DNA of 64,000 bases from Dimorphilus gyrociliatus (lineage: Eukaryota; Animalia; Annelida): NCBI GenBank assembly GCA_904063045.1, contig CAJFCJ010000005.1:3684504-3748503 (forward strand), written 5' to 3'. The notes below the pieces were generated by a model that saw only the letters and a program-made list of their open reading frames with translations, was not told the origin of the DNA and ran no database searches. Shown here piece by piece: positions 56,986 to 64,000 of this stretch; the stretch's first letter is position 1, and every line of letters begins with the position of its first letter. Made by a program: the position numbers and the translations under genes.

Positions 56986-58960
56986 GCGTGCATAGTGTGC
57001 ATTTTTGCAAAAAGACTGAATTCTTTACAATTGTAGCGAGAGGTATTGTGCGCATTGAATTGGGTGAACTTTTTTTGAACATTACTATATTGTCTGTTTT
57101 GAATACAATTGAGCCGGCCGAGCTTGCGGACGTGTATTTATATTAAAATTAATCAATTCAAGCATGACTAAGGCTGTTTACATCAACATTCCGAGTGCAT
57201 TATGAGTATAGCGCCTACAGGTCAAACCTAGTTCACTTGGCAAGTTGACAACTTGTTGAAAATAAAACGTTTGTAATTGTATTCGTCACAAAATGGAAGA
57301 TCACTAAACGAATGGAAGAGAATCTGTATAGCAGAACCATTCAACACGATCAGCAGCTACGTTAGTTATCCAAAAGGATTCAACTAATGATTAATGCTAC
57401 ATGTAGATAATACATTTTACATTAAACACAACAATTAGATGCTAGTACTTTTTTTCATTGTACGCATTTGATTTCGAACAGAATTGTCTTTACTTGATTG
57501 ATAAATTCATCTACAATTTAAAAAATTAAGATTATACGATTCTTAGTGCAAACCCAAAAAATTTTTTTCTTTTTCTATTCTCTCTCTCCCATATATATAC
57601 ATATATATATGTATTATAAAACATTTCATACTGCATCTATAAATGTATACGTATATAGATGTACAGTATAATTAATCTCTAAAAAGCTGGGCTTGCACTT
57701 TGAAAAAACATAGGTAAACGCATTCAAAATGAAAAATAAAATGTAAAATCACAGAAGAAAGAAAGATGATGAATAAGTAAAAGAGACAAGACAGACAAAG
57801 TATCCATCTATCTATCTTCTCTTCTAAATGGAAAACATAGATAGCTAGATGGACAGCAAGAGTTTCAAAAGAAAAAAAAACAAAAATAAACATTGATAAC
57901 ATTATATGTTAAAAAAAAGATAAACAAATTAAAAGGAATATTTTCGAAAATTAACAGAGAGACTCGGTGTGACCCTGTACAAAAAAATCAGTAAGGGTGC
58001 AGTACGGGTGTGACCGAACGAAAAATTCATCACAGAAATAGGCAGATATATAAACTCTCTTGTCGTTCTTTCCTTTTGTTTAATCAAAATTTGAAATAAA
58101 AAAGAGAAAAAACTTTTTTTTTTCGATTCGATAAAAAAAAGAAAAGAAGAAAAAGAAGAAAAAAGAGAGAAAGACAAAAAAAAGAAAAACCAATACAGTA
58201 GAAGTTTAAAATAAAAATTAATTAACTCGTTGTGACCACGCGCGTGCGTTTTTTTTCCTTTTTTTTTGTCTAATCAGCAGATTAATGAAAAAAAAATTAG
58301 TACAATCAGCAGATAATCAGTTAGTGTACAGATCAATGGAGTGATATGCGCGATTAGAGACAACAAAAAAACGATTGCAGGGGAAGAAAAAAGAAAAAGA
58401 AAAAAAAAAGAGAGAGAGAGAGAGAGATGGAGAAAAGAAAACAGGGTAAAAAAATTAAGAAAGAGGAAGAAGGAAGATTTTTAGACGGAGCAGAAAAAGA
58501 AGAAGGAGAAGAAGAAGCAGAAGAAGGTTTCGTATGAACAAAGTAAAAAAAATACAAACAAACAAACAAAAAAAACAAAGGATTAGGTTTAGGGTTAAAA
58601 AAAGGATAAAGCAAAAAATAAAAATACATATAAAGGATATAAGAATTATAAAGGAGAAGAAGAAAAAAAGAAAAGAAAAAAGGTAAAAAGTACCTTTGTA
58701 ACTTTTTTTCTTCTTCTTCCCCTCCCCCTCCCTCCCGCTTCTCCTCCTCCTCTTCTTTAAACAAACGACATGTATAAAAATTCTACAATATAATGCAATA
58801 TATAGATATTTTGTTATTGTTTTTTTTTTCTTTTTTTGTTGTTTATATTTGCATATAAATGCATGGATTAAGGATTTAAATATCCTACATACCATACATT
58901 ATTCTATATGCAAAATATACAACTTCGATATATATATATATATAGATATATACTGTATAC

Positions 58961-58992
<32 letters not shown>

Positions 58993-59210
58993 TAACAATA
59001 ATATTTATATATGCATAAAAGAGGGAAAAAAAAAAGAGACCTTTTTATATCTAATATAATGTGCATACAAAAAAAGCAGAACAAACTGAATCCTGAGACA
59101 CTTATAGCGTAACGTGAACATTAAAATAGCAATATTGTTCAAATCAATTTTTGTTCGAAATATTCTGGGAAAACGCTCGTACGAAGAATATAAATGGAAG
59201 CTCTCATACG

Positions 59211-60876
59211 TCACGCACTACGCCTACCATTAGTTTTAGACGTTTGCATAATTAAAAATAGTGACCTACATTACGAATAATAATAATTTTTGTTATGTAC
59301 AACTTACTGGTCAGAATTTCTACAAGCATGCGCCACTTCGGGAGGTAATGCTTCTGGGGGTAAATTCGAATTTTCATCCTCCATTGGTTGTTCATCATCC
59401 TCCTCCTCCTCCTCCTCATCGTCGTCCGATTCGTGTTCATTGTCGTTTGAATCGCGTTTCGGTAGGCAGAGATCTAACTGCGATTGTGGCATAAGCGCTT
59501 TTAGGGCGTTTGTATACGCCTCTAGATCGATGTTGGACGGGAAGTTCTTCACTTGGGAAACGCTATCCGCCTTGTCCGGTTTGGAGACGGCCAGCGTCTG
59601 TTTGACGGGAGTAAGAGCCTGGGTCGGGAAGGGTAGAGGTTGTTTATTAGCAGTAGCGGCAGCGGCGGCCATAAGTGCCTGTTGTTTCACTTGAAATTCC
59701 GAGATGGAGCTCATCTGTTGAGAAAGTAGAGGCGAACGATGAACGTGCGAGGCGAGGTGTGAATTGAGGTTCTGTTTTGTGAGGAAGCCCTTATGACAAA
59801 TATCGCAGTAGAATGGCCTTGAATTAGTATGAGTCCAAAGATGCCGGTTCATCGCCGATTTTTGGGTGAAACCTTTTCCGCATTGAGTACATTTATAGGG
59901 TCGATAGCCAGTATGGATTCGAATATGAATTTGTAATTCGCTCTTCGCTTTAAACAATTTACCGCATTCGTAACATGGGAAGTTTGGGGGGCTGGATGGG
60001 GTTGTCGGAGGTATAGCTGTCGGAGGGGACATTATAATATGTGACGTAGGTTGCAGTAAGTTTGCAGAAGGTGCTTTGATGTGTGTTAAAGTGTGCTTCG
60101 ATAAATCGAAGGCTGACGGAAAAGTCGCTCCGCATTCCGTGCACGATTGCGGTTTGGACGACATACGGGCCATCTGCAAAAAAAATGGTAACAATAGTAA
60201 TACGGGTAGAGCTAATAGATAATGGATCGATAAGAGCAATATATATATAAATATATACATATATATGTATAAATCAGAGCATATATAAATAAATACTTAC
60301 TTTTAAAAGATTTTCGAATGGTATTGCGTTATGAGAAGTGGAAGAAGAGGAAGATGAAGAGGAAGTGGGAGTGGTAGCGGAGGAAACTGAAGTTGAGTTA
60401 GGCGCAGATGCCTCGCCATTCTTGCAATTTGTATCATCGTTGTTTTCTTTTTCATGGTCAATAATAAGCTTGTTATCCTCTAAACCTTCTTCTTCTTCTT
60501 CTTCTCCATCGTCAACATCATCGTCATCTTGGGCGATATCTTCATTCCTGCTTTCTGGCTTGCTAGGCTGAGAGCGACGTGAGCCAAAGATGGACGTTTT
60601 AGACATAGGGAAGACGGGCGGGGCGATTTCATCGTTTGGAGAGGCGACCTCCTCCTTCACGGATTTGGTCGGGGAAGAGATGTAATCATTCGTAATTGTC
60701 TGATTGATTTTAACGAGGAAGACTTCGTCGGAAGATAACGTGATACCAAGCAGGCCATCGACGGTAATTCGAGGTTGCGTCGAGAAGCTCGATTTGCACA
60801 GCATGCAAATTGTGTCAGTAATTAATTTCTGAAAACGTTCTTTCTCGCTATCGTGCTGCAGCATGGCGTTGGCCAT
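59211..60876 (-). CDS. C2H2 zinc-finger transcription factor (4 fingers) with unnamed N-terminal domain; exons 60876-~60299, ~60176-~59310, probable mini-exon 59223-59211
   Basis: Fingers CTECG..H..H, CYECGKLF..HIRIHTGYRPY, CTQCGKGF..HLWTHTNSRPF, CDICHKGF..HLASH; acidic and Ser tracts; QLDLCLPKR (PxDLS-like); GT/AG at exon ends. Confidence 0.9.
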
Positions 60877-61832
60877 CTAAAAGTAGAATAGAATACAGGT
60901 GCACAATGAAGTCTATACAAAGCGCGCGGCAAGTCTAGGCCTACGGTATGGAATGCAAAATGTAAAGAGCGCATAAGAAGTGGTGAATATATTAAAAGTG
61001 TTGCATAGATCGTATAACGTTTATTTAAAGCATTCATGCACGGGCACGTTTACAAAAATTAGTCTCGACATGTACCTGCTTTTATGAATAGCGAATCGCT
61101 ATTAAGCAAATACTAACAGCACATAAGCCTATACATGTAAAGATAGAATAAATTATATACGCGCCCGTTTCTCTTTTGTTAGACGGCAGCTATGTTACTT
61201 AATTCGATTTAATACTAACTACAAATCGAACGATCGAACATTTAGAAGTAATTAAAACTTACATTCAACATTCGAAACGCTTGAAATTCAACGAAAGAGC
61301 GAGAAATTAATCATTTGTAGCCGCTGCGCGGCTCTACATATGCATAATGCGCAGCACACAGTTTATGCTAGAATGATTCAGTTGTCAGAGCTACATTGAT
61401 GTATCACGATTTATCGCTCACTAAACGCCTAGAAAATATACTGTAGGGCATTTACAATAATCATGATCGCTACTCAATCGTTTTAATGACTATGCTTTTA
61501 ATTACCTAAAATAAAAAAATTCATCATATGTGCAAAACATGAAATACATAAATGTAACAGTACATGTGTGGTGTACATTGCATTTTATCGATTGGTAACC
61601 CCCAACGCCATCTTGTTTATCATCTTGTTGGTTTTGTATCTGAATCTTTCGGCAATTTTTCATTAGCCAACCTAATAAAACAATAATCCATTCCCATTTG
61701 TGCACTGGATCTATAAAACTGGCTTAAAAGGAATTACCTTATATTTTCATAAATTTTAGAGGAAAAATCTGCTTTCGAAAATTCACAGATTATAGATTCT
61801 ATTTAACGCTCCGAACGATAATAGGTGAAGAT

Positions 61833-62321
61833 ATGACTTCCCTTCCAAACGTCTTTAGGAGACAACGAGATAATGAGGAAAAATTAAATGCATTATTTAA
61901 GCAGCATTGTATCAGCTTCTTTAATTTTATGTTTGGAAATTCTACAAGATACAGCGTAAATGCGATGGTAATCGCTCGTGTACAGAAAAACGAAGAAGAT
62001 CGTCCTAGTGGTTGTATGCTCAGATTTGAACATGATAATATCCCAGCAGAAGAATCTTTGTATCATTCAGATATAAGCTCTGAAGATGGAGATGATTTAG
62101 CAAACATGTCATCAGCTAAACGAAAATGTGAAAAATCCGAAGAAGACGTAGAAGAGCCAGTCACCAAAAAGGCTAAATCTGATGAAGATTTAGAAGACGA
62201 AGAACTAGAAGACGAGATTGAAGAGGAAGAAGAAGAAGAGGAAGATGATGAAGAAGAAGAAACTGAGACTAATGACAAAGAAAAACCTAGCACTTCGAGC
62301 GAGGATGCTAACGTGAACTAA
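61833..62321 (+). CDS. Hypothetical acidic nuclear protein, 162 aa, single exon
   Basis: ATG-initiated ORF with a structured-looking N-terminal ~70 aa, bipartite-NLS-like KRKCEK..PVTKKAK and a long E/D tract. Confidence 0.75.
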   Translation: MTSLPNVFRRQRDNEEKLNALFKQHCISFFNFMFGNSTRYSVNAMVIARVQKNEEDRPSGCMLRFEHDNIPAEESLYHSDISSEDGDDLANMSSAKRKCEKSEEDVEEPVTKKAKSDEDLEDEELEDEIEEEEEEEEDDEEEETETNDKEKPSTSSEDANVN

Positions 62322-62449
62322 ATTTATATGTTAATACTCTGGAATAGTTTACGTATAAATAAAATTTTATATAATTATTTAGTCAAAAATAGGAGAGAGA
62401 AAAGAGAATGAGATAGGATAGAACAAATAAGAAAATGAAAAAAAGATCG

Positions 62450-62818
62450 TCATTCAATTTCTTTGCTTAAAGTAACCTTCACATAGCTTCTATCTATTTT
62501 ATCCTCTTCATCAATTTGTAAATGTCGAACGTTCCCTCCTCTTACAATTGATGTTACTGATCGACCAAGCAGCAGAACTGGATGAGATCGATTGTCTCTA
62601 GTAGCTGACTCTTCTCCTATAGAATTTAATTCTGTCCTTTGATCTTTCTTTCTTAAATGAACTCTTGTGTAGGGTTCTGTCGGCAATCTTCTAAACGGAG
62701 TGGAAATTGTCTCATCTATGCTAAGTATATCGGTAGAAGTTTCGCTAAACTCTGAATCTTTTCTTGGAAGAGACTTGAATCTTAGAGAATTAAAAAATGG
62801 AAAGCAAGACCAGCACAT
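62450..62818 (-). CDS. Hypothetical ~122-aa orphan protein
   Basis: Open frame of normal complexity preceded by a TAG acceptor (gtgtag|ctATG); N-terminus MCWSCFPFF. No homolog recognised. Confidence 0.5.
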   Translation of the reverse strand: MCWSCFPFFNSLRFKSLPRKDSEFSETSTDILSIDETISTPFRRLPTEPYTRVHLRKKDQRTELNSIGEESATRDNRSHPVLLLGRSVTSIVRGGNVRHLQIDEEDKIDRSYVKVTLSKEIE

Positions 62819-63138
62819 AGCTACACCCAAATATAATTCTATAAACTAGTTTGCAGAATATTACTTTAGGCCGTAATTGAGCATAACTAATTACACTCTC
62901 TCCCCTGTACCTTTTTCTTTTTTTACTAGTTCATTACAGTACTGAAAACTAAAAAACATAAAATAAGTAACGCACTCAACTCAAAGTTAGAGTCGTTTCT
63001 ATTTTATGCAATTATCGCTAATTAGATCATAATTTTTTCCCCCCTTTATTTTCTATTTTTTTTTTTAATGATAATTTTCGTAAATGAAAAACAACAAGTA
63101 ACAATAATTTTTACAGTTGAATCTTATCCAATCTTCCT

Positions 63139-63773
63139 TTAGTAGTAATCGTCGTTCATTTCGCTCGCTGTTGCGAATAGACCTCTCTCTTTTAATGCTT
63201 TTTGCTTCCTCTCTCTTTCTTCGGCTTTTAACGCTTCTTCTTTCCTTTGTAATTCGAGGATTTGTTCTACCGATACTTCTTTTAACAGTTTCTTTTGTAA
63301 ATCATCATCCTGTTAAAGTGCATTTTGATAAAAGAGTTATTATTATTCTTATTATTAGGTTCGCTTATCTATTATATTATGTTTGATGATATCGCTTACC
63401 ACTTCTCCTAACAAAACAACGTTTTCTCCTCGAACGACGAATATTCCTCTTTCGATGTCACCGTACTTCTTACCGACGTGAATTCGCTCGATTGTATCCT
63501 GAAGAACCAGATTCGCTATCGGGGTAGAATATTTGCCATCAATATAAAAAAGACGACAGCACGCAAATAATCGATATTAACCGAACTGATCGATGCTCCT
63601 TAAGAATCCAATCAACGTCCGACCGTCACGTAACACTACGAGTAACTTCTCTGAAAAATGAATGAACATTTAATAGCTTTGAAAAACCTATCAATAGTAA
63701 GTCATGATTATTTACTGTCAATTTCCTCTACAAGACTAGCTGTCCCTGGTAAGTAGCTTGAAAGAGAAGCCAT
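63139..63773 (-). CDS. LSM1: U6 snRNA-associated Sm-like protein LSm1, 4 exons
   Basis: [13 protein letters not shown]|[23 protein letters not shown]|[39 protein letters not shown]|..KALKERGL..*. Absent from the ORF track. Confidence 0.96.
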
Positions 63774-64000
63774 TTTAAATAGACTAAACTTGCCGATAAA
63801 GGAAAAGTGATTAATTGGTTTAATAAGAGATGATATTTATAAATAAAAAATCCCTTTTTGAGCTGGAGAAGCGATAAACTGGCAAGTCATTAATAAACAG
63901 TTTCGTAGTTTATTTATTTGATTTTATTGATTTGTTTTATAAACTTACTGTTTTATTGTTGCTGTTAATTTAAGTAATATATATTTATATATATACTATA

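Follow-up and report, generated by a model that had tools for sequence, protein, structure and literature searches.

We analysed a head-to-head pair of genes in a 64,000-nucleotide window of the annelid Dimorphilus gyrociliatus (contig CAJFCJ010000005.1, positions 3,684,504 to 3,748,503): DgyrCDS3989, which encodes a C2H2 zinc-finger protein on the minus strand, and an open reading frame (ORF) for a 162-aa acidic protein on the plus strand. The best explanation, to which we assign a probability of roughly 0.7, is that these are two separate functional genes that are transcribed divergently from a single short promoter region and have no detectable common origin. A sequence-only reading of this DNA had proposed instead that the two N-termini arose by an inverted duplication and that the finger-less protein acts as a partner or antagonist of the zinc-finger factor. 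That model is unproven and unlikely on present evidence. The proposed Id-like pair would be a neat regulatory module, but the only evidence stated for it, a short ungapped alignment, proved to be at chance.

A divergent gene pair and its promoter region

Transcript evidence was taken from assembled contigs of public RNA runs placed on 59250-62900 (X1, X2 and X13, the last a transcriptome-like assembly). Positions 58300-64000 were aligned to a genomic contig from a close relative, L003, the sole genomic comparison to cover the intron and promoter. The spliced zinc-finger product was taken as database protein P0003, and exons were read from ORFs and splice sites. The features are as follows.

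59304..60173, minus: last coding exon of DgyrCDS3989 (289 codons plus stop; acceptor TTGCAG followed by ATGGCC)
within 59304..60173, minus: four C2H2 fingers and an acidic C-terminal tail (ORF; Pfam zf-C2H2)
60174..60300, minus: coding intron, 127 nt, GT..AG (joint 60173/60301 in contigs of X1, X2 and X13)
60301..60876, minus: first coding exon, aa 1-192 (ORF; donor AAA followed by GTAAGT)
60680..61453, no strand: near-frozen block (4 changes in 774 nt against L003; 770/774, 99.5%)
60685..60849, minus: predicted 'LLGITLD' N-terminal domain, aa 10-64 (family hidden Markov model (HMM) 83.8 bits; AlphaFold2 (AF2) predicted local distance difference test (pLDDT) 80)
60877..61262, minus: intron in the 5' untranslated region (5'UTR), 386 nt, GT..AG (joint 60876/61263 in RNA run X1)
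61263..61312, minus: 5'UTR exon of the zinc-finger gene, minimum extent (X1 contig 5)
61313..61644, no strand: between-gene gap without transcript contigs, the shared divergent promoter region (contig ends 61312 and 61645)
61645..61832, plus: unspliced 5'UTR of the plus gene (X13 contig 8 starts at 61645; 69% identity to L003)
61833..62321, plus: 162-aa ORF, small acidic nuclear-type protein (ORF; RNA contigs X1, X2 and X13)
61833..62072, plus: constrained N-terminal 80 residues (no non-synonymous changes against relatives)
62118..62177, plus: bipartite motif resembling a nuclear localisation signal (NLS), KRK(96-98)-x13-KKAK(112-115) (read from the translation)
62181..62264, plus: glutamate/aspartate (E/D) tract whose length varies between relatives (translation; L003 comparison)

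The start codons at 60876 (minus) and 61833 (plus) diverge across 957 bp, as the sequence-only reading had described. The transcribed regions are much closer together. The contigs of the two genes end at 61312 and 61645, which places them at most 332 nt apart, and X13 contig depth is absent across 61324-61567. The divergent promoter region that the two genes share is thus short, some 330 bp at most. Judged by contig ends and not by mapped cap sites, their starts lie less than 1 kb apart, within the definition of a bidirectional pair. The same RNA data sets contain transcripts of both genes, and L003 keeps the divergent pair. The bidirectional arrangement proposed earlier is thus supported. The D. 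gyrociliatus genome holds about 209 genes per Mb (PMC7854359), and at this density head-to-head pairs are expected by chance. A YY1-like motif (CAAGATGGCG, minus strand) was observed at 61603-61615, approximately 30-40 nt upstream of the likely start of the plus gene; it is conserved in L003 amid a stretch of 76-90% identity.

On the minus strand, the exon model of 192 plus 289 codons gives 481 aa, equal to the length of P0003, the annotated product of DgyrCDS3989, which the last coding exon matches at 100%. The first exon encodes the N-terminal domain, an S/P linker, an acidic tract and a Ser-rich end, and the protein runs on, as had been noted before, into four C2H2 stretches (Pfam PF00096, 70.4 bits against a cut-off of 25.2, E 8.7e-20). 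The coding joint was seen in contigs of three runs, including one RNA metatranscriptome. The start codon at 60876 directly follows a splice acceptor, which places the transcription start of this gene at or beyond 61312, away from the ATG. The 386-nt 5'UTR intron is spliced in X1 and retained in X13 contig 7, which continues unspliced to 61292. Once this intron is removed, an in-frame ATG lies 9 nt ahead of the annotated start (adding MLN, to give MLN-MANAM...); when retained, the intron itself contributes several upstream ATGs. Intron retention at the 5'UTR could control translation of the zinc-finger gene.

The plus ORF is a genuine gene, both transcribed and constrained. Its expression, on which the duplication model had also depended, is evident from the contigs of all three RNA sets, and in X13 contig 8 Illumina adapter letters immediately precede the first base, 61645, which makes this position a likely cDNA 5' end. 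Over codons 1-80 we counted 31-36 synonymous and no non-synonymous changes against relatives (36 and 0 against L001, the contig of relative P0002); against L003 the proportion of synonymous differences (pS) was 0.68 and that of non-synonymous differences (pN) was 0. The tail is looser; aligned to L003 it shows a pN of 0.13, with gaps at 22 codons. Against 5.8 billion proteins, a word-based search with the 162-aa protein returned only itself and one relative, P0002 (138 aa), and a 141-aa orthologue was found in L003. Judging from this search and L003, the protein appears to be restricted to Dimorphilus and close relatives. The NLS-like motif and E/D tract reported earlier were confirmed and are present in all three proteins, the relatives having KRK-x11-KKAK or a KRAK variant. 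The layout is that of a constrained 80-residue module (a predicted helix plus hairpin), followed by the NLS-like motif and an acidic tail of variable length. We have here a small lineage-restricted acidic protein whose N-terminal module is under near-absolute purifying selection.

Downstream of the plus gene, the last exon of a convergent gene (62450-62830, minus) ends approximately 130 nt from its stop codon. One X13 contig spans both genes and the sequence between them (62322-62450), indicating that their 3' ends overlap or nearly touch.

A near-frozen block at the start of the zinc-finger gene

The near-frozen block takes in codons 1-65 of the zinc-finger gene together with its 5'UTR intron and exon, and reaches about 140 nt further upstream. 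No change was found at 42 synonymous sites of codons 1-65 when compared with L003, where a pS of 0.25, as found for the gene itself, would predict approximately 10 (P ~5e-6); pS in the rest of the gene is 0.24-0.25. The 5'UTR intron is identical at 382 of its 386 positions (99%), against 80% for the 127-nt coding intron. Identity is 100% across 61263-61449, 85% across 61450-61644 and 69% in the 5'UTR of the plus gene. Synonymous sites near the block differ by 25-68% from L003. The block occurs only once in the DNA compared. In run X2, which represents another lineage, 60700-60876 carries two changes, versus about 10% in the plus gene. Synonymous divergence from L003 also differs among the neighbours, at 0.25 for the zinc-finger gene, 0.43 for the convergent gene and 0.68 for the N-terminus of the plus gene.

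We read the block as a probable site of dense cis-regulatory or RNA-level constraint on the start of the zinc-finger gene. In D. gyrociliatus, where the median intron is 66 bp, open chromatin is found at promoters and within unusually large (first) introns (PMC7854359), and a dense regulatory module in this position fits that pattern. Searches for other content found no tRNA in the block, no CTCF consensus in the window and no match to the block in a metagenome scan. With its 774 nt, the block is a small and concrete case in which to examine how a miniature animal genome packs its regulatory information.

An alternative is that the block is not constrained at all and is a recently shared haplotype, passed between lineages by introgression or gene conversion, or else an artefact of a mixed-sample assembly. 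In its favour, the edges at 60680 and 61453 are sharp, and for the intron and promoter there is a single genomic comparison. Folding energy is unexceptional on both strands (z -1.6 and -0.7) and no Rfam family matches, leaving the block without an RNA-structure signal. Against this, the same contig was recovered from two independent runs of the relative (L003, L004), the left edge falls where the domain-coding part stops, and in this genome regulatory chromatin is found in large first introns. X2 is also nearly unchanged in 60700-60876 and its changes are other than those of L003, for which long-term constraint is a better fit than one transfer. We consider a shared haplotype or an artefact unlikely, and continue to regard the block as constrained.

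Are the two N-termini related?

The N-terminal domain of the zinc-finger protein belongs to a large family. An exhaustive HMMER search with residues 1-75 gave 868 cluster representatives at E<1e-3, with the match mostly N-terminal. A family HMM was built from 160 domain copies out of these matches, and residues 10-64 of the zinc-finger protein are the part that it matches. The HMM consensus is ..dqervkkLLtdtitlLCkngLsyekelsveGLlGITLDkdevfLVninet.., with the motif LC.NG...GLLGITLD..EVFLV.INE. Two positions are invariant (C27, T46) and conservation reaches at least 90% at eleven others (L18, L19, L26, N29, L31, L42, G44, I45, D48, F53 and I57).

The ungapped 37-aa alignment of the sequence-only reading does exist. 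It starts at residues 11 and 14 and has 5 identities, 12 positives and a BLOSUM62 score of 13. As evidence of homology it did not hold up, since 367 of 2000 shuffles of the 162-aa N-terminus (18%) reach that score when all registers are allowed. The best real register between the two N-termini is a different one, with a score of 17. BLASTP found no alignment between the N-termini. In the proposed register, only one of the 13 conserved family positions is kept in the 162-aa protein (L18, as L21). C27 falls on F30, T46 on R49, G44 on I47 and F53 on D56, so that neither invariant residue is retained.

Profile methods, which the sequence-only reading had itself suggested, gave no more. The 162-aa protein scored -2.1 bits with the family HMM (hmmsearch --max, E 0.17 at Z=1), and profile-profile comparison with hhalign returned a probability of 0.2-0.3%. 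In a six-frame scan of the window and fetched loci, approximately 20 ORF fragments outscored the plus ORF, which was itself unlisted at E<=10. Smith-Waterman scores of the 162-aa protein against 160 family domains equalled those of shuffled queries. At the DNA level, the only inverted repeats between the two genes are GAA/acidic low-complexity tracts. We thus find neither a signal in sequences, profiles or profile-profile comparison nor a DNA trace for a common origin by inverted duplication.

Predicted structure is where the two proteins agree. AF2 models the zinc-finger N-terminus, from a 75-sequence alignment, as a helix (2-30) and a hairpin (36-47/51-62) with a pLDDT of 80, rising to about 90 for its core. 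For residues 1-85 of the 162-aa protein, a 2-sequence alignment yields a helix (4-34) and a hairpin (40-52/55-67), with a pLDDT of 75.5 for the best model and 53-64 for the other four. The predicted topology is therefore the same for both. PDB sequence searches, Foldseek and wide VIA-align searches found nothing above noise for either N-terminus, and sequence-feature searches of the ESM Atlas were without usable match for both. A fold search of the ESM Atlas with the 162-aa model had as its top row an unnamed cluster with a TM of 0.50; this candidate could not be verified and was set aside. The sequence-only reading was to fall if profile similarity were absent and the folds were different: we found the first and not the second.

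Several observations weigh against our preferred explanation of two genes without common origin. Both models have their elements in the same order and of similar lengths (helix of 29-31 residues, loop of 5, strand of 12-13, turn of 2-3, strand of 12-13), and these elements are offset by 3-4 residues, which is the +3 register of the sequence-only reading. Among 48,161 chains, the VIA-align neighbour lists of the two models share 9 of the 50 listed (8z5v, 8z4d, 6xg8, 6vfy, 2gvh, 1ml8, 1y2i, 4njl and 9xqs), where chance would give about 0.05. For the seven shared chains that were checked, the chain ranges agree; this overlap over the same ranges indicates that the two models have the same shape. 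Shared shape and shared neighbours leave room for a very old or fast-diverged duplication. The exhaustive profile search was, moreover, seeded with the zinc-finger domain, and it was a word-based search that the 162-aa protein received. Finally, we infer both the self-association of the domain and the nuclear localisation of the 162-aa protein.

A helix followed by a hairpin is a common arrangement, and all VIA-align matches in the PDB have Z below 5. The likeness of the N-termini is most likely an analogy, a simple supersecondary shape found in both predicted models. The shape is weak evidence for remote homology, which is unproven and in our view quite unlikely.

We can now weigh the proposal that the 162-aa protein is a finger-less paralogue, produced by inverted duplication of a promoter and first exon, that kept the fold and serves as an Id-like partner or antagonist. 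Besides the matching topology and lengths in the proposed register and the shared structural neighbours, it is in keeping with the order of both products (domain, linker, acidic tract), with the divergent orientation that inverted duplication of a 5' module would yield, and with the frequency of finger-less members in the true family, where C2H2 motifs occur in only 12 of 159. Yet every sequence and profile test is at chance, the GLLGITLD and EVFLV motifs are absent along with the invariant C27 (opposite F) and T46 (opposite R), and the DNA retains no trace of a duplication. The N-terminal module of the plus protein now has a pN of 0, and loss of the signal would require an unobserved burst of change. 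The structural argument draws on a model built from two sequences, four of five versions of which have a pLDDT of 53-64, and on a helix-hairpin arrangement that is common and whose PDB matches all fall below Z 5. A finger-less paralogue at this locus is accordingly a doubtful proposition. A more specific form of it, in which an unrecognisable LLGITLD paralogue heterodimerises with and titrates DgyrCDS3989 or the lola-like isoforms DgyrCDS4065/4066 as an Id-like switch under a half-frozen promoter, is very unlikely. If true, it would provide an Id-like switch for an unnamed zinc-finger partner domain, with one promoter whose zinc-finger half is frozen.

Database searches with the 162-aa protein itself gave little to go on. 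No Pfam family matched at threshold, and the nucleoplasmin and NAP/SET families had no match at E<=1 nor at E<=10. DUF7480 (PF24295) was rejected as a candidate for aa 12-54, its 19.9 bits being below the 27-bit gathering cut-off; in the papers searched, one mentions this family, a study of the Salmonella type VI secretion system. There was no sequence match in the PDB, fold searches reached only Z<=4.5 with unrelated chains, and a metagenome scan for relatives found none. We suggest that the protein is a nuclear, oligomerising binder of basic proteins. The more definite identification as a fast-evolving acidic nuclear chaperone of the nucleoplasmin, NAP/SET or similar type, unrelated to the zinc-finger gene, would suit the NLS-like motif and long E/D tail, the high contig depth in the transcriptome assembly (a weak measure, as contig depths cannot rank genes) and a low-scoring VIA-align match with C. 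elegans NAP1 (Z 3.1), but it is highly improbable given that Pfam offers DUF7480 alone and sub-threshold, that the PDB has no sequence or fold match, and that the predicted helix and hairpin correspond to neither the beta-sandwich of nucleoplasmin nor the earmuff fold of NAP.

The LLGITLD family and comparison with known systems

The LLGITLD family is large and animal-wide, occurs on zinc-finger and finger-less proteins alike, and is without a name, Pfam model or structure. When the query and 75 family members were compared with Pfam, no model matched except for four weak STN1_2 matches, which we took as spurious. The domain had no match in the PDB by sequence and none by Foldseek. C2H2 motifs are present in about 12 of 159 members, the remainder being the domain and a disordered tail. 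Named members are two C2H2 proteins of Paralvinella palmiformis as well as DgyrCDS4065/4066 (P0212, P0073), which have an LLGITLD-type domain and lie on the same 4.5-Mb contig, outside the window. These two are annotated products of a second local gene, a paralogue; they have 196 N-terminal residues in common and differ in their C-termini, with fingers in one only. Fish zinc-finger matches (P0033-P0038) were rejected as orthologues since their N-terminal region is without the LLGITLD motif by inspection, with no formal comparison made. At the locus of family member P0061, no partner-like ORF was found beside the gene. A reverse-transcriptase gene (RVT_1) lies 4.7 kb downstream of it on a eukaryotic contig, at L002:11474-12750.

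DgyrCDS3989 would be a sequence-specific C2H2 factor with an N-terminal helix predicted to pack on a long beta-hairpin. This N-terminal domain may be a self-association module, used in the manner of BTB, ZAD or SCAN. Three considerations led us to this suggestion: the small, open fold would need a partner; six of the top matches (P0056-P0060, P0063) carry the domain twice in tandem, which hints at a module that pairs with itself; and DgyrCDS4065/4066 put the domain before alternative C-termini.

The locus can be set against several known systems. It resembles other bidirectional promoters in the short distance between divergent transcript ends (at most about 330 bp), in the presence of both genes in the same RNA sets and in the arrangement kept in a relative, and is unlike them in its very asymmetric conservation, with 100% identity towards the zinc-finger gene and 69-85% towards the plus gene. 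The block recalls ultraconserved non-coding elements and the constrained 5' ends of developmental regulator genes in being a long, nearly unchanged stretch over promoter, UTR, intron and synonymous sites, here of a gene for a transcription factor; it is seen here in two or three close lineages and not across phyla, and it differs in being long, at 774 nt. Id/bHLH dominant-negative partners are alike in concept, with a pairing domain that lacks the DNA-binding part beside a DNA-binding member, but the shared pairing domain is what defines Id/bHLH and no sequence test demonstrates one here.

In shape, the LLGITLD domain resembles the MADS-box core of SRF and MEF2, in which an antiparallel hairpin comes after a long helix and dimerisation runs through the sheet. 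MEF2 is among the best neighbours of the zinc-finger model (7x1n_B, Z 3.6; 1egw_A, Z 3.4). These Z values are, however, in the range of noise, the domain has no SRF-TF match in Pfam, and MEF2 is absent from the neighbours of the 162-aa model. The LLGITLD helix is not basic, which makes DNA binding by the module unlikely.

The closest parallel in architecture is with the BTB/POZ, ZAD, SCAN and KRAB proteins. The domain has no Pfam match to any of these, and its prediction as one helix and a long hairpin within about 55 residues is unlike the alpha/beta BTB, the zinc-bound ZAD and the all-helical SCAN. The similarity is in the compact N-terminal module, the disordered or acidic linker and the C-terminal C2H2 fingers, and in the occurrence of the module on many paralogues, also without fingers. 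DgyrCDS4065/4066, with one domain before alternative C-termini, are comparable to BTB in lola or fruitless. The LLGITLD domain may thus be a further class of zinc-finger partner domain beside BTB, ZAD, SCAN and KRAB.

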